Shown here piece by piece: positions 30,701 through 52,133 of a DNA stretch of 64,000 nucleotides (within the stretch, counting starts at the first letter, position 1; every line of letters starts with the position of its first letter). The translations under genes and the position numbers were made by a program. The notes below the pieces were generated by a model that was given only the letters and a program-made list of their open reading frames with translations, had not been told where the DNA came from and did not search any database. The stretch comes from Oikopleura dioica (Eukaryota > Animalia > Chordata): positions 14,198,001 to 14,262,000 of the forward strand of contig OU015568.1 of assembly GCA_907165135.1 (NCBI GenBank), given 5' to 3'.

Positions 30701-32472
30701 ACATCGGAGACATGATTGTCAAAAAAAAGCTGGTCTAATCGCGCACGAGCGCTTTTCAAATGAGTTCACGTTCCTACTAAGCAATTCCAAAAAAGGAAAG
30801 AAGGACCGGAACTTCAATGGAAACCTCCTTTACCTGTACAGGGGCGAATGGGCTAGAGTCACTGGTCGAGTAGAAGGCACCTCGCTTGTTCTCGCAGGTG
30901 ACTCGTTTGAAGAAGCAATTGATCTAAAATCCAACATTGCTCTTCACGGCGCAGTCTGCTTCGATCACGTGAAATTCATGGCAGAAGTTGATCACGAATT
31001 CTGCTTCGGAATCGAGCACATTCCAGCTTCGTTCGGTTCCAAGTACCGCCCTGAAATGGAGTACTTCTGCGCTCTGAACCTTTCCGATAAACAGAACTGG
31101 TTCGAGACATTGAAAGATATCGTCAATTCTCCGCCGAGTTTACCTGCAAACGATCATAACAAGTTCGACGTTCAAAAAGTTCATTCGTTCCAAGATAAAA
31201 TTCCTGATATTTGTTGCAGTACTCAGGTAACCCTTATTTATTCGATAAAAACTAACTTTGCATAAGATCGATGGATATACCCTCATTGGCTCAACAGACA
31301 ACCTTCTGGCGACAGACGGCAAAACCATTGTCGTCGCATCCAAAGCGCCGATAGTTGAGTTGGAGTCCTTCGAAGATCTCGTATTTGGAATAGGTTACAG
31401 AGAGCGATATCCAGTCTTTTTCTACGCCGACGGAGTCCGAAGTCTTATTCGAAGCAAAGTTCAAATCACATTCAACAGAATAACAAAAGAAAGAGTTCAC
31501 GTTATCAAGGCAGGACGATATCAAGGAAAATATGCTCTTGCTGCCGCATTCAACACGTAAATAATCTGGAAAAACTCATCAAGCTCAATTTGTTTTTAGG
31601 ACAATCAAGCTCTTCCAGTTCTCTAAACAGCACGCGCTTGATAAAGAGTACGAAGTCCTCGAAGTTCTCCGCGTCAAACTTGACAGTGCTCCATCATCAC
31701 TTGCCTTTTCCTCAAGCTCATTGATCTGCGGAACCGACAGAATCATCGAAGTCGACTTCCATAAACAAACAGCTGAACCGTATCTTGCCGAGTCCGAGCT
31801 TCGCAAAACCCACCAAGAGAAGCCTATTGATATGTTTGCGCTTTATGATGGAGGAAAGGTAGAAAATAACGATTTTAATAGAAAACTTATCGTATTCAAG
31901 GAGCGGCATCTAATCTGTGGGCAACATGGAGGATACTTAGTAGACAACTGCGGCCGAATCGTCCAGCGAATCAACTGGTCATCCCTTCCACTCGACTTCA
32001 AGTACTCCGAACCCTACCTCTTCGTATCCCACATGTTCGGCATCGAACTCGTGAAGATCGGCATTGCACAAGTTTCCCAGCCGATCATTCTATCTTCCTT
32101 CCGGCCGAGACTTTTGGGCGTGGCAGGCGAAGGACAGGTAACATGATGATTCCTCGGCAACTAATAATCATTATTTATTCAGCTCATATTGCTCTCGCGT
32201 CCGTATGGAGAGAAGCGGTCCGCCTCGGCGACGGTGAAAATTTTATCCGGCACTGAAGAGATCGAATATGACGAAGCCATCAGTGGCCCAAGTTCGCTAA
32301 ACTCCCACATCGGCCTAGCTTACAGACCATCTAGGTATTGTCAAAAATAAGCATCAGCCATTCAAATATATTCAGAGCATACCGACAAACCGCTCCAAGG
32401 ATCGAGCCTCGGTTCGAGCTCCAAAATGAAACCACTTCCTCGGGCATGATGGAATACTCTGTCTACCGATAA
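27704..32472 (+). CDS. CIT: Citron (CIT)-like protein without kinase domain: coiled coil, degenerate C1, PH, CNH
   Basis: About 900 aa of coiled coil. HQQAKLIEMLQ...KKK...PPLYKDLEKQI resembles the Citron QQTKLIDFLQ...KKKK...PLQYNELK segment. PH domain ends ...KQNWFETLKDIV and a CNH domain follows over several exons. Reading-frame break at the A8 run 30721-30728. Confidence 0.85.
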
Positions 32473-32691
32473 AAGGGAACATACCTACTTTACTCAATTT
32501 ATTTTCCTTATTTTTATTGACCTCACTTCACCTTCCCTTTCCTGCTTCTAGGAACTGCCTTACACCCTTCACATTCCACAGCAAACTTATTTTTTTCCCA
32601 GAAATTGTTCTATCCAACTTTAATTGCGAATATCCTATGCAGAGCACTCTTCATTTCAGCAGCCTCATAAAATTATTGAATTTAGAATGCA

Positions 32692-34260
32692 ATGAATAGA
32701 CAAGGACCCGAATGGGAACGAAAACAGACAGCAAAAACTTATAAAAAGTATGAGACTGGAATTCCCGGTTCGGATGACGAAGATGAATGTAAGTAAAAAC
32801 ATCCCGCTATTGGTAAGAATTTTTTTTTTCAGTGATATCCACTGAGGGTAAAGTTCCAGATCAATTCGGATTCTTTCAATCTCAACGATACAAACAAAAT
32901 GAGGCCAAGATACTTAACTCGAACAAGCGGACTACGAGCAGAAGAGAGAAGAAATGGCAAAAGATGCTCAGAAAATACGATCGGAGTTTGACCAAGAAAC
33001 TTCCCGATAGAGTGTTCAAAGGTGTTCCCAACAGTGTTCGGCGTGAGTATTGGATGGCAGCTCTTGATCCAATTTCGTTGAAGCAAGATTACAACCAAAA
33101 GGGAGCTCAATTCAAGCACCTGTATAAAAGTAAAAAGGACGATGTCGAAGTCGTCCGCCAAATCGACCTGGACATCAAGCGTACTTGGCGTCTTCACCAG
33201 AAATTCTTCAAACCATATAGCCAGGATCAACGCTCCTGCTTTAGGATACTGCTTGCTTATGCTGCGCTAGACCAACAAGTCGCTTATTGCCAGGGAATGA
33301 GTCAAATTGCAGCTTTATTTATGATCGTCCTCCAGGACGAAGAATATGCATTCTGGTCGCTTGTAGCGATTATGAACCAAGACCCATGGAGTCAAAGGGG
33401 CATGTTCAAACCTGGATTTCCCAAGCTCAACCTTTTCTGCGCCTACTGGGATAACACCCTTCAAAAGCACCTTTCAAAGGTCTACAATCATCTCGAAGCT
33501 GAAACGCTGATATCCCAAATTTACCTGACAAAGTGGCTCCTACAAAACTTTCTTGATCGGCTTCCCTTTCGTCTTGCAATCCGATTGTGGGATTGCTTTA
33601 TGCTCAAAGGAGACGTCGTCGTTTTAGCAGCGACTTTTGTTCTCTTCAAACTCAACCAGAAGAAAATCTTGCGAATGAGCTTTGAAGATCTGACGCCCTT
33701 CCTGCAAAATGATATCTGCAATTTGACCATTCCTGATGACACGTTTTTTCAACAAATTAAAAAAGGTACGTTTTCCAAAATCTTTCGAGCTAATCAAGTA
33801 AATAAGCCATTCCCTAATTCGCGCAATGATGACCAACCAGCAACGGTCAGAACTTCCTCCTTTCGATCGAACAAAATCACTCCCCACTCGGTCGAGGCCT
33901 GAACCGCAGCCGAGCAATCGAAGTAAAATAAAAACCCGTAAGTTTTTCAACTAAATTTCTGTCTTCAAAGTATTCCTAGTGGACATAAAAGTCTCTCCCA
34001 CTATTACCTCCATGCCAAAGCAACCGATAGATCCCATCGAAACTCCTGTGCCAAAAGTCCGCCAAAAGAGACCTAAAAACGATTCTAAAACGACCATTCA
34101 AAGTCCCAAATCACCGTCAAAGACATCTACGACCACTGTATCTTCATCGAACGGCTACCACTTTGATTCATCGAAGGTAAAATGGGAAATACATCTTTGA
34201 AAAACAGACAAGAGAGCCAAAAATGTGTAGAAGTCAATTTGTTTCAAGTTGATTGGATGA
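32692..34260 (+). CDS. USP6NL: TBC-domain Rab GAP, USP6NL/RN-tre family
   Basis: DQFGFF, KWQKML, RVFKGVPNSVRREYW, IDLDIKRT (catalytic Arg), YCQGMSQIAALF (catalytic Gln), EEYAFWSL, GFPKL, LAIRLWDCFMLKG. The 3' end is approximate. Confidence 0.88.
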
Positions 34261-34769
34261 AATCTTAAAAGTAAGGTATTTTGATAGAGGTTAGAAAGAA
34301 AGTCTGCTTGTAGCTTGATGTAGCTGTGTTTGTGAAGTAGAAGAGCTTAATAATAGTGTAGTGTTCTGTGAATTTTTAACAGATGAATTAGCATAGACTT
34401 ATTCATTGAAAGCTTTTCTTAATGTTTTATGAATTTAACGATTTTCTAGCCCGTAAAACGAGTGGAAGTGATGCCGACAAAGATTCAAGCGAACTCGTTT
34501 CTAAAACATTCGCACCACTACGAAGAACTAATTCAGAACAAGATTCTCGATGAAACACACAGTCCGAGTGGAAGTCGCGAGTCTCGACGATCAACTCATC
34601 TGTGAAACCTCCACAAATTAACATTATCAAAGTAAACCTATTTTTCGCTCCATTTGTCCCAGTCTGTCAAACATTCGTCTCCGCGCAACTTGTATCATTT
34701 CTGTAAACTTTCATTTATTAATTATTTATCTAACGAAGAACTTTTATTTACTTGTTATAGACAGGAAGA

Positions 34770-36209
34770 ATGGCGAATAGAACGGTAAAAGGGGCGAATA
34801 CGATTAAGGGAACGAACCCTCAGTTCCTGATCGAAAAGATCATCAGATCCAGAATTTATGAATCTCGATACTGGAAAGAGGAATGCTTCGCTCTTACTGC
34901 AGAGCTTCTTGTTGACAAAGCGCTTGAATTAAAGGTAGTTGCCCCTCTTTTATTTTATTGACCAAGGTGTTTAGTATGTTGGTGGAACAACAGCTGCGCA
35001 TGTGAAGCCTACTCCGTTCCTGTGCCTCCTTTGTAAAATGCTCCAGATTCAGCCAGAAAAAGACATCGTCATTGAGTTCATAAAACAAGATGAGTTCAAA
35101 TATGTGCGTTGCTTGGGCGCTATGTATCTCCGACCAGGGCTCGAATAAATAAGACTCAGCGCTGACACTTTTCGCGGTGATTCATCCTCGCGGTGTCGGC
35201 TGAGGCGACACCGCTCTTCGACCGAGTCGGGCCCCTGACACCATTTTTCTGATTCACAAGCTTTCTTAGTTTGATTTTGATCCTCGCCGACCCAGCCCGG
35301 CTCGCGTCGCTCTCCCTTGTTCATTATCACTTTTATGATCGAAAAATTTTCAGTGTCACACTGTGTCAGGGGCTGACACCGAGCTGGTGTCGCCTCGGAT
35401 GACACCGTCGCGATGAGTTGGCAAGGCGCGCGACTCAAAAAGAATGAATCAGCGTAAAAGTGTCAACTCCGAGTCTTATTTTTTCGAGCCCTGTCTCCGA
35501 CTTACCGGCAACTCGGTTGAATGTGAGCCAAATAAATATTTTCTCCCAATAATTATGTTCTCAGGCTATAAATACTTGGAAGAGCTTCTCGCGGATTTTA
35601 GAAGAATTAAAACGATGAATAAAATGGGCGCATTCCAAGTCAGTCATATTGACGAATTCATTGACTCTCTTTTAATCGAGGTGAGTTATTTGGCATTTAC
35701 TGATGATAGCTTGAGAGTTTAGGATCGAGTTTGCGAAGTAATCCTCCCGCGTTTGCAAAAACGAGCTGTTTTAGAAGAACAAGGACTTTTGAAGCCCCGG
35801 TGGAGCGCGTTAGAACAAGATCTTGAAGAAATGGATAAAGAAGAAGAGGCTCAACGAATGGTTAACTTTGACCGTGAATAATTGAAGGAATGCTTTTTTA
35901 GGCTGCAGAACTCGCAAAGGAAGAGGAAGGCTATGAATCACCAGTTCCATCCCCACCGAGAAAAGAAAAGAAAGAGAAGAAAGAGAAAAAGTCTAAAAAG
36001 GAAAAGAAACACAAGAAATATAAAGATCTCGATGCTCCTGAGGAGTCTTCAAGACGCCGGTATGGCCGAATATCCCAATAGTCTTAATAAAAATCTCTTT
36101 TTCCAGCTCTCGTTCTCGAGATAGATCCCGAGATCGCGATCGAGACCGACGTCGAAAGCGATCTAAGACACCCGAAAGCCGTCGTCGAAAATACTCTGAC
36201 TCTAACTAA
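34770..36209 (+). CDS. PRPF38A: Pre-mRNA splicing factor PRP38A, interrupted by a MITE in exon 2
   Basis: MANRTVKGANTIKGTNPQFLIEKIIRSRIYESRYWKEECF, KPTPFLCLLCKMLQIQPEKDIV, LGAMYLR//LTGNSVECYKYLE, SHIDEFIDSLL, DRVCEVILPRLQKR and a K/RS-rich tail. Confidence 0.96.
35135..35493. mobile_element. 359-bp MITE (hAT-like) with about 53-bp TIRs and 8-bp TSD TCTCCGAC
   Basis: Left end CAGGGCTCGAATAAATAAGACTC and right end GAGTCTTATTTTTTCGAGCCCTG. TCTCCGAC occurs at 35127-35134 and 35494-35501. Additional internal inverted repeats. Confidence 0.93.
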
Positions 36210-36290
36210 ATATTTCTTGCAATATCGTACTGCCACATGTCATCGAAATATCTCCATTCATCCCTCTATTTTCAGAGAAAAATCTTAAAA

Positions 36291-38386
36291 ATGGAGAAAG
36301 CGCTTGACGCTCGAGCGCGATTACGTCAGAAAAGGGCGATGACAGCGGAAGAAATGGATTCATTTTGCGCGATGTACGACGATATCATCAAAGCATTCGA
36401 ACTTCAACGAAAAGAAAAGTACGAGGCTGAGGACTCGCTTCTGAGCCTCGCGATGGTAATGGAAAAGACGAGACAAAAGTACATCGACCTGAACTCCGAA
36501 GTCATCGATTTGCGCCATAATAACAACGTTCTCCAAAACGAACTTAAAACTATCTCCACCAAATACAGGCTCGCTCGGGACTCCTTGTATGAAGAGACAA
36601 AGGCAAAGGAAATGTTGCAGAAGGAAATCAAAGATATGGAGGGCACTGTGGCCCTCGTAAAAGATATCATCTTCGAAAACAACCAGAACATCAAGCTCGA
36701 TGAAAGTCAACGGAACCGGCTGGTCCGGGCGTGCTCCGTCAAGAGAACAGATTCGATTCGAGCGACTCCAATGAAAAAGCTCATCCCAAGAAGACCGGTT
36801 GCAGAAGAAACATTTTTTGATGAGACTTGCATGAGCCAGGATGATGTTTCTTTCGACGAAACACTTGATGAAGAAGAAATTCAGCCGATGACTCCTGTTT
36901 TCAAAACTCCAAGGTACCCCTTTTCATCAACTGTGATTTCATAAACAATTTTAAGACGTGGAAAACGGTCTGTTGATACGCTGAAAATGGACGAAACAAA
37001 CTTACCAGAAGCATCCAGCACGATTTGCTCCAGTGAAAACGACTCCATGGCCAAAAAGTCAAAGGTAAATTAATCTAGAATATTAATTACTCAATGAATA
37101 TTAAAGGTGATGGAAGAGTCTGAACCCGCCTTCAAGGGTACAGTTTCTGCGGTGAAACGCCGCAGTCAAGGTTTCACAAAACCAACAGGCGCTACCGCAC
37201 GACGGCGGCAAAGTCGTCACTTCAGGCAATCTGCAATCATGGAGGACTCATTTGAAGTGATTCAAGAAGAAAAGACACCTGATACGACTCCTGATACAAT
37301 TTCGAACGCAGACTCTTTCTTCCAGACGCCTCAAATCGTCGCCAACACTGCAAAGCCGAGAAAATTGAAGCTTGATAGAACTAGCAGCGTTTGCTCTGAC
37401 AAATCGAACAGATCAGACCTTGTTGAGCACAAATTCACCACAAGCCGAGTCTTGACTTTTGAAACCTGCCGAGTTTGCTTCAAAGGCATCAAGTTTTATT
37501 CGAAAGCGAGCAAGTGCGATGAGTGTAAGGTCATCTGCCACCCTGATTGCGTCTCCAAGCTTGACATCACCTGCAAAGATACGAGCGTTCCGATCGAGAA
37601 AGTTACCGTCGGTCCAAAGCCACTTGAAGCCTTTGTCGACAAATCCCAAAAGCCGCGTATTCCTGGGGCGATTTATTACGCTATTCACGGCGTCGATCAG
37701 CAATTGACTGAAGAGGGTATTTATCGAATTCCCGGGTCAACTAAAACTCTCCAGGAAATTAAACGCAAGGTTATATTTGGTGACGTTAACTCTGTCGTCT
37801 GGGCGGATATCGACGTGCACACACTTGCATCGTTTGTCAAGGTAAATTAAAATCATCCAACCGGCTCGCAAAAAGAATTATTTAGGACTTCCTTAGATGT
37901 CAAATCTCCGAACCAATTCTCACATTCAAGCTCCTTCCACAAATTATCGAAGCCGCAAAGCATGGCTACTCTGAAGTGCTGAAGAAGCTCATCAAAAAGC
38001 TTCCTGATGCTAATCGAGACACCATCGCATTCATCATCGTCCACTTGCAAAATGTCATCACGAATTCGAAGAAAAACCAAATGTCCGAAAACGCTCTCGG
38101 TAAGAAATGCATTTTTTATTTTGAAACTAATAAAATCCCGTCTAGCAATCGCAATCGGACCCTCCTTGGTCGGCTTCACGAAAGATAAACCTTCGGCTCA
38201 AGAAATAAAAGATGCCGCTGAATATCAGGTGCGTTTTCTTTTGATTAAGTATTCTCATCGATTAATAAATCATTTCAGGAGATCGTTGCTGAAAATCTGC
38301 TTCGCATTCCAAGGGACTTCTATTGGAGCTTGATGGACGTACCTGAAAACAATATTGTCGCTAACGAAGGTGCCGACCCGCTTTGA
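36291..38386 (+). CDS. RACGAP1: Rac GTPase-activating protein 1 (MgcRacGAP/CYK-4)
   Basis: N-terminal coiled coil. C1 domain HKFTTSRVLTFETCRVCFKGIKFYSKASKCDECKVICHPDC. RhoGAP domain EEGIYRIPGS (Arg finger), LPDANRDTIAFIIVHL, NQMSENAL and IGPSLVG. Confidence 0.9.
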
Positions 38387-39107
38387 TTGTCGAAGATATA
38401 GATCCCCACTTCTACTTTAACTTCTTTACGTTCCAACTTTTGTACCATATCACTGATCTTAAGACATTCCTACTCTTTCTCTCTACCTTTCCGCTTATAA
38501 TACATTCCAAAAACATCAACATCTCATGATGTATCCGTCTGCATAGCGCCGGATTCATTTTTTTCTTATTTTCATGGCAGGCAATTGAATTTATATTTAT
38601 AAGCAGTAAGGGCTAATGGGCCATTAGTAATGACATTAGTGAGTGTCTGAAAGTTAAGTTAGGTTAAGGTTTTATTATTGCGGAGGTATTTGAGGCTACG
38701 AAGGGTATTAAAAATTGAGAAGCGCTCATTTATATTTGAGCAGGCGTCAGTGCTGAGAGTCACAAGTCCTACGCACTCTTCAAGGCATTTTTCATTGAAT
38801 TTCAAGCATAGAATTAAGAGGATCAATTTTACGAAGATTATTGAATAGTAACGAAAAGAGGTAAGTCAGATAATTCTTCGATGAATGATAAAACAACACC
38901 AGAACCTTTTTGGGCAGTTTAAATCTCATAAGTTGAACTCTCTTAAATTAGCCGTTAGCGGAGTTTAATCAAATCTCCAGATCGAAATATAAAGACCAAA
39001 TTAAAATCCAATTAGGAATCCTCGCTTGGCTGAAATCACTTGGTTTATTGGAGCATCCAGTCTTAAGAGTTTGAAGATTATTCGAGAGACCCCAAAGAAA
39101 ATATCAG

Positions 39108-39882
39108 ATGAATGAAATTTTCCGAATTGCAGCAATCCTTCCGTTCATATCTGCAGGTAGGTACCTTTACAGCGGATAGCTAAGATGAATAGTTTTTTCA
39201 TGTTTCGTAGAAATTTCAAACAATAGAATCATTAAATAATTTTTTTCTTGCTTTAGGTTCAAAGAGCGTAGAATTTCGTGGCAAGCATCTATAGAATTCG
39301 ACTTATTAAAACCACATTTGTGGGCTCAGTAACTCAATTTCTGCTTTCGCCAAGCTCTGATTGTCGACTTTTGATTAGATTGATTTTGGTCTTGAATAAT
39401 TCAGTTTTGTCTTTGAGAAAGGGTAACCCTCCTTTAGAGTGGGCTGAATGGTCTCGTTGCAACAGTTGGTGCAGCAAGGGGATGAGAAACCGATTATGGT
39501 TCAATAACGAAACACAGGAGTTGACAGACAAAGTGCCGGATCTACAAGAGTCCCGGGAGGAATGTGATGGAGAAGATCTTTTTTGTGCGTTGTCATTAGG
39601 CCTGCCAGGCGTCTTTGCGCTTTTGGCAACTCTTGCTATTTACACGCTTTGCAGGTATTTTTTAGGAAATTGATCAGGGTCATTTTATTTTAAGAAAAAC
39701 ATCCTCTGGGGACTTATCTCGAGGTCACAAAGCTCTACTCAGCTATCGAACTGTATTCGGTGCTAGAAAGAGTAAGGCGAAAGCTGAAGCGGCTAAAAAG
39801 GTAAATTCGTTTTAGCAACAAGATTAGACTTTACACTTAGGAACCTGTAGCGGAAGAAGCCGCGGAAATCCAAGACACCTGA
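39108..39882 (+). CDS. Small single-pass membrane protein with a TSP1-like motif
   Basis: WAEWSRCNSWCSKGMRNR...ECDG is followed by TM LSLGLPGVFALLATLAIYTLC and two spliced cytoplasmic exons ending ...EIQDT*. The 5' exon structure is unresolved. Confidence 0.5.
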
Positions 39883-40418
39883 TTCTTCAAGTGAGAGTTC
39901 AAGACTTTTTGCATGATCTTGCATTATTATCTTTCTTGCAAAGGAACGAGCCTTCAGATTTATTTTATTTTTATTGCAAATAAATGGATAAGCACAACCC
40001 AATTTTTGAAAACACAACAATGAGAATTGGATTATCTCCTGCAAGTCAAGATGGATTTCGATCAAGTTATTCGCGCACGAGCAATCTAAATGGATGAATA
40101 TAATTCTGGAAGATATAATACGTCGTGACGTTGAATATAAAAGTCAAGAAGATCAGGATTATCAAGCACTTCGATGGCTCGCTCTTCAAATCGTCGGCAG
40201 AGAACAGATATTTTATAGACTTCAGCGTTTGACAGCATTGCGGGTCTTTAAAAGGGTTCAGCAATCAAGAATTGGCAATTGCTGTATTTATTATTAAAAA
40301 TTGTTGTATTATTTGAACCCGCTCGCGAAGACCGCGTTGTATGTGGTTATTGTATTCCAGAATGAGCTGTTTGATGGAAAATCTATACCGCCGTCGTTTC
40401 TGAAGCAAATGCATTAAA

Positions 40419-49260: not shown

Positions 49261-52133
49261 ATGAGCTTGACACCGCCATGGCGATTGAAAATGATAAAAG
49301 ATGTTATTTTTGTACTTTTTCTTTTCGGAGTTTTCTTAATTTTACGCTCGGCGATGGTGAACAAAATAGAATCAAAGCCAGTGTCGACCTTTAGAGAAGA
49401 TGTCATCAAGAATTTTGAGTCTTACTACGACTCAGAGATTGAAATTGAAGATGAATATGAAGAAGAAAATTTGTCGAACATTTATGAAAACGGCGAAAGT
49501 AGGGAATCCGGAAACGAAGAAAGTGCAAAGAAACCTACAGGTAATCATTGAATATATTTTTTTATAAATTATCTTCCATTAATAGACGAGGAGCTCAAAG
49601 CAACCTTCGAGCACCGGAAGCAAGTGATGCGTAGAGGATGTTCGGTCATCAAAAAGATTCAGCAGCTTATGATGACTGGCACATTTGAAAATCTCTTAGA
49701 GCTTCATAAAATCATTTATGATGTTTCCAAACCCATACCGCCCGCGTGGAAGTCGCCAGGAAAATGCAGACCTGATAATGTACCGCAATCTGCTGTCAGC
49801 AGGGGTCTAAATATCAGCCGAAATCCTAGTGCGAAAGCGAAGCGAAAGCGAACCATTTTTTCAAACTTTTTGCGAAGCGAAAGCGAAGCGAATTTTTCGC
49901 CCATGTGCGAAGCGAAAGCGAAGCGAAATATCATTGAAAATTGCGAAAAAAAGCGAAAATTTTTTCGCTTGAATTGAAACGCATTTTCTGGCAAGAATCT
50001 TTAGCAATCAGACACTCAAAAGCGAAGATGATTTCAAAAACCTATTTTTGGGGCAGAAAATTACAAAAAAATCTGTTACTGTACCTTTTTCCAGCTCGTC
50101 AATATAAGCCGAATGGTGGGTCTAACTGTTGATTATTCAAAATTAGTAATAAACTCGATATCAGGGGTGACTATTCGGGTATCGCCGATGCCGCATCGGG
50201 AAGTCGGGGAAAACGGACAATTTTCGGACAAAATTTGTTCGGCCGGGCATTCGGACGGCTTAGCTACTTAAATTTGGCCGGGCAAAAGCGGGCATTTCGT
50301 GCATTTGGGCAAGCTCGGCACTTTCGGGGAATTCAGCGCTTTTGGGCAGTTGGTCAAGCCCGCGCCGAGGAAAATTCTTAAATTTCGCATTCTTTACAAC
50401 TATTTATGCTCTCATGCTCAAATCTCTAACTGAATCAAAAGCCTCTCGATTCGAGAGTCTCGAAACATATTTTTCTAGCCCTTATATATTGAATATCCCA
50501 TCACCAGCTCGACCGGGCATTCGGACGGCGCGACTCTTGGCCCTTGATTTCGGCCGGGCATTCGGATGGCCAATCGACGATTTCTTGCCATGATGGCCAG
50601 GACCAGCTCTATAACCAGTCAACCGTTGGATTTATTGAGAGTTAGACCCACCATTAGACTCGTCTTGACAAGACTGAGAAAACTTGAATTTATAACGGCA
50701 TCAATAATGCCCCTCTCCAACTCTTTGATTAAGACTCTTCCGAATAGAAAAGTCGCTTGCAGTGCGAAAATTTTTGCGAAAATTTGGGAATTTTTGCGAA
50801 GCGAAAGCGAAGCGAATTCTGCTCTCAAGTGCGAAGCGAAGCGAAAGCGAATTCGCTTCGCTTCGCATCGCTTCGCAATAAAGCGAATTCGCACTGCGAA
50901 TTTAGACCCCTGCTGTCAGGTAACTATAAAATGCAAGGAGAAATTTTGAGTACGGGTATTTTCAGATTGGTAGAAGATCCATTCAATATCTTGATCTGTT
51001 TACCACCAAAATGCGGTACAACTAATTGGCAGCGAGGAATGAATACCCTGAACTCCATTATTGACGGGAAAAAACGAGAGCCCGAGACGTTCTACCCGCC
51101 AAAATTATACAGTCTTCTTCCAGTTCTAACCACCAAGCAAATCGATAGCAATAAGACCAAGCCGTTGAGATGGGAAAGAAAAGTTGCGAACACCAGAAAT
51201 CCCTTTGCTAGATTATTTTCCGCGTGGAATGACAAAAGCAGAAATCATCTTGATGAGCACGGAGAAATAAGTTTTGATGAGTACGATCTACAAATATTCC
51301 GACATTTTAAACCTCCTCTCTTTAGCTTTTCGGGATCAAGAATTCTTCAACTTGTAGAAGAAGGAAACATATCAGAAGCAAAGAAGCGCATGCGAGGAAT
51401 TATTGCTGACAAGACGAACCACTTCCATGCGCCATATTGGGCCGGAATCAAGCCTTTTCAAACTTCGCGGCCTCCAGCTGGTAGAAATTCTTCATTCGAA
51501 GGAACGGTTTTTTAAGAAATCAAGTATCAATAAAAGAGGCAAAAGATTTAACAGCCTCAGAATATCGAAATAAACCAAACTCAAGCATTCGCCGAATACA
51601 TCGTCGCTAACCCTGGTAATTCAAAAATGAACCACCACTGGAGAACTCTTTACGGCCAATGTGCTCCTTGTGCCGTTGAATACGAGTATATCATCCATCT
51701 AGGTAACCTTTTGACCCAAGTTTTTGCACTATAATTTTATAGAGGAAAGTCTTTACGAAACTCCATACTTACTAAAACGACTTGGCGTTAACGAGCAAAC
51801 GCATGTCCCTGGAAAATATTCATGGTCTCCGGCTGGTCGAGAGGAGATGAAATGGAGTTCTGTGCCTCGGCTTACTGCTGAGAAGATTTATCAGCATTAC
51901 TATGCGGATTTTGTGCTCTTTGGATACTCTCCTGACGAAGTTCTTGGGTAAATAAGCGTTGTGAACAACAGATTTAAATTTTTTTAGTTTCATCGATGCG
52001 ACAAGATCGGATCTAAAAGCAGCTTCTGTAGCACAAAGAGATCAGTCACGTGCAAATCTTTTTCCAATGCGAAAAAGTTATTTATCGAAATACTACGAAG
52101 GCTGCCAAAACTAGCTTATTGAAATCTTATTGA
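49261..52133 (+). CDS. Carbohydrate sulfotransferase (Sulfotransfer_2, CHST8-14/HNK-1ST-like), interrupted by a transposon
   Basis: Type II TM, 5'-PSB ICLPPKCGTTNW, 3'-PB TRNPFARLFSAW, SFEAFAEYI, NHHWRTLYGQCAPC and YQHYYADFVLFGY. Confidence 0.88.
49800..50912. mobile_element. 1.1-kb non-autonomous DNA transposon (hAT/P-like termini) with subterminal GCGAA arrays
   Basis: Ends CAGGGGTCTAAAT and ATTTAGACCCCTG. CTGTCAG is duplicated at 49793-49799 and 50913-50919 (7 bp, or 8 bp GCTGTCAG if the terminal G is shared). Dense GCGAA(A)GCGAA repeats at about 49830-49960 and 50760-50900. Confidence 0.9.
51502..51585 (+). other. Non-canonical GA-AG intron in the sulfotransferase gene
   Basis: GAA G|GAACGG...CTCAAG|CA TTC restores SFEAFAEYI. 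The GT alternative at ACG|GTTTTT is out of frame. Confidence 0.65.

Follow-up and report, generated by a model that had tools for sequence, protein, structure and literature searches.

A hAT-type MITE in a conserved exon of Oikopleura dioica PRPF38A: probably a young truncating allele, not a nascent intron

Introduction

The only annotated copy of PRPF38A in the OKI2018_I69 reference assembly of the larvacean Oikopleura dioica is interrupted by a short transposable element, which lies within a conserved coding exon. Is this element an intron at its birth, removed by splicing between its own ends, or does the reference contain a disrupted allele of the gene? A preliminary description of the locus, made from the DNA letters, had proposed two explanations, namely a heterozygous null allele and an introner-like MITE family that exploits relaxed recognition of G-N donors. 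To weigh them, we analyzed the surrounding stretch of 64,000 nucleotides (GenBank assembly GCA_907165135.1; contig OU015568.1, positions 14,198,001 to 14,262,000, forward strand), hereafter called the window, whose first letter is position 1 in all coordinates given below.

Results

Structure of PRPF38A and the interrupted exon

PRPF38A consists here of six exons, with a predicted product of ~286 aa ending in a lysine- and RS-rich tail. The features of the gene and of the insertion are as follows.

34770–34934, + strand: exon 1, 55 codons from the ATG; Pfam PRP38, E 1.6e-14; identical or nearly identical to Oikopleura PRPF38A N-termini.
34975–35134, + strand: exon 2, part 5' of the insertion (exon 2a), ending in ...AMYLR plus C; Pfam PRP38, E 2.2e-19, profile 48–101.
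35127–35134, no strand: left copy of the TSD, TCTCCGAC, 8 bp, seen in the window sequence and at the empty-site joint.
35135–35493, no strand: non-autonomous hAT-type MITE, 359 bp, delimited by its TIR ends and the 8-bp TSD.
35135–35172, + strand: left TIR, containing an in-frame TAA (35146–35148) and candidate G-N donors at 35137 (GG), 35138, 35139, and 35143 (GA).
35456–35493, + strand: right TIR, containing a pyrimidine tract and AG at 35487–35488, a candidate acceptor with G at −3.
35494–35501, no strand: right copy of the TSD, TCTCCGAC, 8 bp, seen in the window sequence and at the empty-site joint.
35502–35522, + strand: exon 2, part 3' of the insertion (..TT ACC GGC..., LTGNSVE), matched by sister-lineage mRNA that is then joined to 35565.
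35565–35680, + strand: exon 3; Pfam PRP38, E 6e-7, profile 110–151; an RNA joint lands at 35565.
35723–35860, + strand: exon 4, orthologue match DRVCEVILPRLQ...EEAQRM; a cross-lineage RNA joint 35861 to 35907 backs the GT-AG intron 35861–35901.
35902–36059, + strand: exon 5, lysine-rich tail; the translation AAELAKEEEGYESPVPSPPRKEKK... agrees with orthologue tails.
36107–36208, + strand: exon 6, RS-like tail and stop codon; the translation SRSRDRSRDRDRDRRRKRSKTPESRRRKYSDSN* agrees with orthologue C-termini; the preceding intron 36060–36106 is GT-AG.

The five ordinary introns are 40–47 nt long and of the GT-AG type with YAG acceptors, and the gene is intact apart from the insertion, as judged by direct translation and comparison with orthologues. 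The orthologue assignment is based on the presence of PF03371 on exons 1–3, collinearity with animal PRPF38A, and the basic/RS tail. Full-length orthologues were found by a profile having the separate exons as rows and by the cluster listing, the exons being searched singly; in the orthologue alignment (MAFFT), exon 3 was left out as a row of its own. The members of the O. dioica PRPF38A cluster share 96–99% identity (19-member cluster, 4 left out), and a search of representative sequences with exon 2a returned relatives at ≤88% identity only.

The insertion point is located between R108 and L109 of the YLRLTG motif in exon 2. Hence the element splits YLR-LTG, as noticed in the preliminary description, with the exon pieces on either side matching PF03371 and the break falling between R and L. 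Across 20 animal sequences, Y106, R108, and G111 are invariant and the motif Y-x-R-x-x-G contains no indel; an indel was likewise found in none of at least 25 PRPF38A proteins of the Oikopleura lineage.

The Bergen O. dioica orthologue, of which the window exons encode the Okinawa version, aligns ungapped to human PRPF38A (PDB entry 4RZA; also 4RZ9 and 5F5S, and 5O9Z and 6AHD for the spliceosomal B complex) over residues 1–189 (E 9e-86). It differs from the human protein in having a shorter tail (~286–290 aa in total vs 312 aa), and the reference allele differs further in being interrupted. In the AlphaFold model of the Bergen orthologue, which has a mean pLDDT of 50.6 and values of only ~70–77 in the region 80–150, the insertion site, at a local pLDDT of ~70–75, would lie two residues short of the end of a helix (97–110); tentatively, the tolerance of an insert at this position is not obvious either way.

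The same exon also varies elsewhere. In two larvacean-like ENA contigs of ~0.5 kb (P0029 and P0039), the open reading frames leave the exon at the equivalent of ~35086, after ...DIVIEFIK, and enter non-coding-looking sequence (VSSLL.. and VNIFS..). The reading frames suggest that these lineages have an intron after EFIK that is absent from the Okinawa gene, which would be presence/absence variation within this exon.

The inserted element

The element begins with CAGGGCTCGAA... at the left and ends with ...TTCGAGCCCTG at the right; its TIRs start with CAGGGCTCG, of which CAGGG is the first five letters. The two arms are 38 nt each and 89% complementary, and the two 8-bp copies of TCTCCGAC are identical. 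Exact TIR ends together with a perfect 8-bp TSD show that the insertion arose by true transposition. The 23-nt terminus occurs twice in the window (chance expectation, 0), both times as an end of the element at 35135–35493, and a looser pattern matched the same two ends only, with no second copy in the window. hAT-like elements have ends of the form YARNG, for example CAGGG, with which the TIRs of maize Ac begin. We place the element in the hAT superfamily on account of its CAGGG termini and 8-bp TSD, a combination characteristic of that group; the terminal motif is like those of Ac, hobo, and Tam3.

No transposase open reading frame was found in the element, which is crossed by short reading frames only, the longest (129 aa, minus strand) extending into the exon. 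With 359 bp, the element is far below the size needed to encode a transposase and is therefore a MITE. For its RNA, a single long hairpin is predicted (−174.7 kcal/mol; z = −10.2 relative to shuffled sequences), in which the left TIR pairs with the right TIR in a 38-bp stem and the donor region pairs with the pyrimidine tract. The element thus resembles hAT MITEs with Ac/Ds-like termini in its 8-bp TSD, CAGGG-starting TIRs, palindromic body, and lack of coding capacity, and also in belonging to a family of several copies that are present in some individuals and absent from others. It differs from them in that the family apparently comprises only a handful of copies at ≥90% identity, the read depth behind this figure being a poor measure of copy number.

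The insertion is most likely young, judging from the perfect TSD and from the integrity of the other exons and of all five GT-AG introns.

Empty sites and other copies in DNA samples

For comparison over 33900–36400, we used the Logan contigs of two DNA runs, X1 and X6, the latter from a different study; such contigs can show presence, not absence. In X6, one contig of 538 nt joins 34767–35126 straight to 35494–35658 at a depth of 132/132, and this is the sole form seen at the locus. X1 also has an empty-site contig, with a depth of 12.1 and the joint 35126 to 35494. Both joints skip exactly 367 nt, with eight ambiguous letters corresponding to the TSD, that is, the pre-insertion sequence. The insertion is therefore not fixed. 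As to its occurrence across individuals, a point raised in the preliminary description, the empty site is present in X1 and X6, and the filled junction was not found in the contigs of either. Two further look-ups gave weak negatives that depend on gene calls: no open-reading-frame product crossing either filled junction is on record by exact match, and no match was returned when exon 2a, extended by the four element-encoded residues, was used in a homology search.

Other copies of the element exist in both samples. Their contigs pass from the element into unrelated flanks at exactly 35135/35136 and 35493, and one of the copies in X6 has ATTGGAAT on either side, a second 8-bp TSD. In X6, which is without this insertion, the element nonetheless has 3–4 times the unique depth. 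The element is a mobile hAT-type MITE and this insertion is unfixed, because the site is empty in other samples and other copies have identical ends and different flanks. Two or three other copies, few as they are, can be seen by their flanks in X1 and X6, and these flanks are AT-rich, contain stop codons, and are not exon-like.

Two minor variants were seen in these samples. Another family copy in X6 carries 33 different letters in place of 88 nt (35299 to 35388), a derivative by internal deletion and replacement. One contig end in X1 implies that the AAAA run at 35082–35085, in coding exon 2, is one A shorter; either an error in sequencing or another variant that shifts the frame may account for this.

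Could the insertion be an artefact, in which mis-assembly or mis-polishing of long reads placed the element in the exon, so that it is absent from this locus in all animals? Consistent with such an error are the failure to find the filled junction in X1, X6, the RNA runs, or public gene calls, and the different letters of X1 at 35281 and 35293 within the element (its flanks differ by ~1%). A perfect 8-bp duplication at the exact TIR ends is, however, the signature of transposition and not of a chimeric join, and copies at other places have the same terminal bases, one of them being flanked by a different 8-bp TSD. We consider an artefact extremely unlikely. The OKI2018_I69 reference was derived from one male with ~3.6% heterozygosity; HaploMerger2 was used to merge its 99-Mb diploid draft, giving a reference set and an allelic set (PMC8008620). 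With a single animal, this level of heterozygosity, and merged haplotypes, an insertion private to one haplotype can easily end up in the reference. A heterozygous null allele, the first of the two explanations in the preliminary description, fits the empty site in two DNA samples, the ~3.6% heterozygous merged reference, and the broken gene models described below, the assembled animal itself being presumably heterozygous at this site.

RNA from a sister lineage

Two RNA runs labeled as the same species, X24 (bulk oligo-dT) and X21 (single-cell), were compared with the window. They match it at only 90–95% identity and therefore represent another cryptic lineage. Eighteen sister-lineage reads extend from 35129 over 26 letters that include five synonymous differences, and then enter exon 3 at 35565. 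The mRNA of this lineage accordingly reads YLRLTGNSVEC uninterrupted and confirms introns 2 and 4. These reads document that the exon was ancestrally uninterrupted and that the motif is under purifying selection; their bearing is on this lineage and not on carriers of the insertion.

A separate observation concerns 34153–34185, where sister-lineage RNA reads match, at ≥90%, only this 33-nt island and have long loose ends on either side; this island is probably a short conserved exon piece of the upstream RabGAP-TBC gene.

Retention of the element and the public gene models

If retained, the element plus one TSD adds 367 nt and shifts the frame, in agreement with the preliminary description. 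The read-through is CGA CCA GGG CTC GAA TAA, so that translation would meet the stop at 35146–35148, four codons into the element. Two public gene models, together spanning window 32692–36081 (OU015568.1:14230692–14234081), are affected. The first (window 32692–35148; 524 aa; Pfam RabGAP-TBC and PRP38) extends from the upstream RabGAP-TBC gene across PRP38 exons 1–2a and ends at the TAA of the left TIR. The second, CAG5090166.1 (Oidioi.mRNA.OKI2018_I69.PAR.g12484.t1; 170 aa; window 35444–36081), begins with MNQRKSVNSESYFFEPCLR at an ATG (35444) inside the element and also runs through the intron 36060–36106, ending in ...RRRYGRISQ. Its locus on the PAR chromosome, OU015568.1:14229444–14238081, corresponds to window 31444–40081, with every letter identical. 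Both models are wrong owing to the insertion, one being a RabGAP-TBC/PRP38 chimera and the other a 5'-truncated protein that starts in a transposon.

The annotation of OKI2018_I69 used RNA-seq hints from the same culture (PMC8008620). That this RNA-guided annotation adopted no intron across the element counts against splicing, in a suggestive manner only, though the models may be purely ab initio here. As things stand, the practical value of the finding lies in annotation: PRPF38A in this widely used reference is the insertion allele, and the empty-site allele should be taken as the gene.

Candidate splice exits

The main alternative to a disrupted allele is a nascent intron, in which a permissive spliceosome would splice out most of the element, from a left-TIR donor of the G-N type (GG at 35137 or GA at 35143) to the AG of the right TIR, so that PRPF38A would stay functional with a few residues added. 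The arithmetic of the GG exit put forward in the preliminary description holds: removal of 35137–35488 (GG..AG) takes away 352 nt and is predicted to leave PPCLR, in frame and free of stops, as YLR-PPCLR-LTG. A second exit, which that description had missed, would use the GA donor at 35143 with the same AG, to remove 346 nt and leave seven residues (PGLPCLR), again in frame and stop-free. Perfect excision within the TSD is not available, as had been stated there: no GT..AG or G-N..AG pair removes exactly 367 nt in the TSD register, and even the most favorable in-frame choices would leave 15 or 21 nt behind.

The GG-AG exit is unremarkable, arithmetically right and not distinctive. When any G donor and any AG acceptor are allowed, there are 57 in-frame, stop-free G-N..AG pairs around the site. 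For elements with these ends and an 8-bp TSD, the residue is 2 + 5 + 8 = 15 nt; since it is always 15 nt, the in-frame state is a one-in-three property of the geometry. Compared with the U1 consensus CAG/GUAAGU, the donor CCA/GGGCTC shares nothing but the invariant +1 G; at +3 it has a purine, G, where the local donors have A, and the register that would retain an exon-side AG (CAG/GG) is out of frame. The likely real donors in the window are mostly GTAA by a noisy heuristic: de novo intron calling found 47 GT candidates in the two strands, compared with 7 in the single reversed-sequence control strand, a comparison suited to qualitative use only. The right-TIR acceptor, described at first as strong, does have its AG at 35487–35488 and a good pyrimidine tract; the attribute "strong" does not hold, as it has G at −3 (CGAG/) vs YAG in all five introns of the gene.

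Some general features of larvacean splicing speak for a nascent intron. In O. dioica, about 11–12% of introns are non-GT or otherwise non-canonical (PMC8008620), GA being the commonest class of non-canonical donor, reportedly with AG upstream and A downstream (PMC7072748). In the larvacean Fritillaria borealis, MITE-derived non-canonical introns are established and spliced, with the ends AG-AC or AG-AT (PMC11282704). In addition, the structural model, whose local confidence is moderate, would put the insert where a helix reaches its C-terminus, next to a turn. Against this stand the candidate sites themselves, as both donors are without an exon-side AG, the GG donor is also without A at +3/+4, position −3 of the acceptor is G, and donor and acceptor alike would be held in the 38-bp stem of the predicted hairpin of ~−175 kcal/mol. 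Furthermore, the insertion is absent from the empty-site contigs of X1 and X6, the RNA-guided annotation used no such intron, and no indel occurs at the motif in at least 45 sequences. Because larvaceans are known to be permissive, in-frame G-N..AG splicing keeps a place among the possible outcomes, as an unlikely one on these sequence features.

A cryptic canonical rescue could also be envisaged, in which a GT in exon 2 (TAT/GTGCGT, 35104) is joined to the TIR acceptor ending at 35488, or exon 1 is joined to 35489, to yield an in-frame altered and probably hypomorphic protein. The route from 35104 would remove 385 nt and replace VRCLGAMYLR by PCLR, with a net loss of six residues. Both predicted products are in frame and stop-free, and GTGCGT resembles a normal donor more closely than do the G-N sites. 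Nevertheless, the invariant residues V99, R100, L102, G103, A104, and Y106 would be deleted, and the acceptor has the same weaknesses (G at −3 and the hairpin). Such a rescue appears very unlikely from these sites.

Comparison with introners and proposed origin of the allele

The situation is similar to that of introners and MITE-derived introns of Micromonas, Aureococcus, dinoflagellates, and F. borealis, in that a short element with TIRs and a TSD lies in a coding exon of a marine eukaryote, here of a larvacean lineage with relaxed splice rules, and one end of the element provides a pyrimidine tract and AG. Introners are, however, excised precisely, by means of one splice site in the element and one co-opted from the TSD, whereas exit from the O. 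dioica element would leave 15 or 21 nt. Introners are also found in hundreds of genes as real introns in transcripts, whereas the present family appears small and the insertion is unfixed. As for Fritillaria, its intron ends are AG-AC or AG-AT, unlike the candidate G-N..AG exit considered here. By analogy, O. dioica might neutralize exon-borne hAT MITEs by TIR-to-TIR G-N..AG splicing that leaves 15 nt, in which case such exon insertions would be segregating proto-introns and not null alleles; we regard this idea as improbable. The introner-like family with relaxed G-N donors, the second explanation in the preliminary description, found no support, given the 57 such pairs, the poor sites within the hairpin stem, and the flanks of the few visible copies, which are not exon-like.

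Altogether, the insertion is probably a young, unfixed hAT-MITE allele of PRPF38A, most likely truncating and carried opposite an intact allele, and not a nascent intron. In the history that we propose, one haplotype of the Okinawa laboratory population of O. dioica recently received a hAT-type MITE by transposition into exon 2 of its single PRPF38A gene, and this was the haplotype that the merged reference assembly retained. The insertion allele would give a truncated or decayed message and behave as a recessive loss of function, persisting by virtue of the intact other haplotype, with little or no in-frame splicing of the element. If carriers did splice it in frame, the locus would show an animal gaining an intron at the polymorphic stage, which is rarely seen.

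A second element in the window

A second, unrelated element of ~1.1 kb is located at 49793–50921, with the termini CAGGGGTCTAAAT... and an 8-bp duplication, GCTGTCAG; it carries repeats of the GCGAAAGCGAAGCGAA type. It lies directly upstream of a canonical donor (CTGTCAG/GTAACT), so that the exon end is duplicated and parted from its GT.
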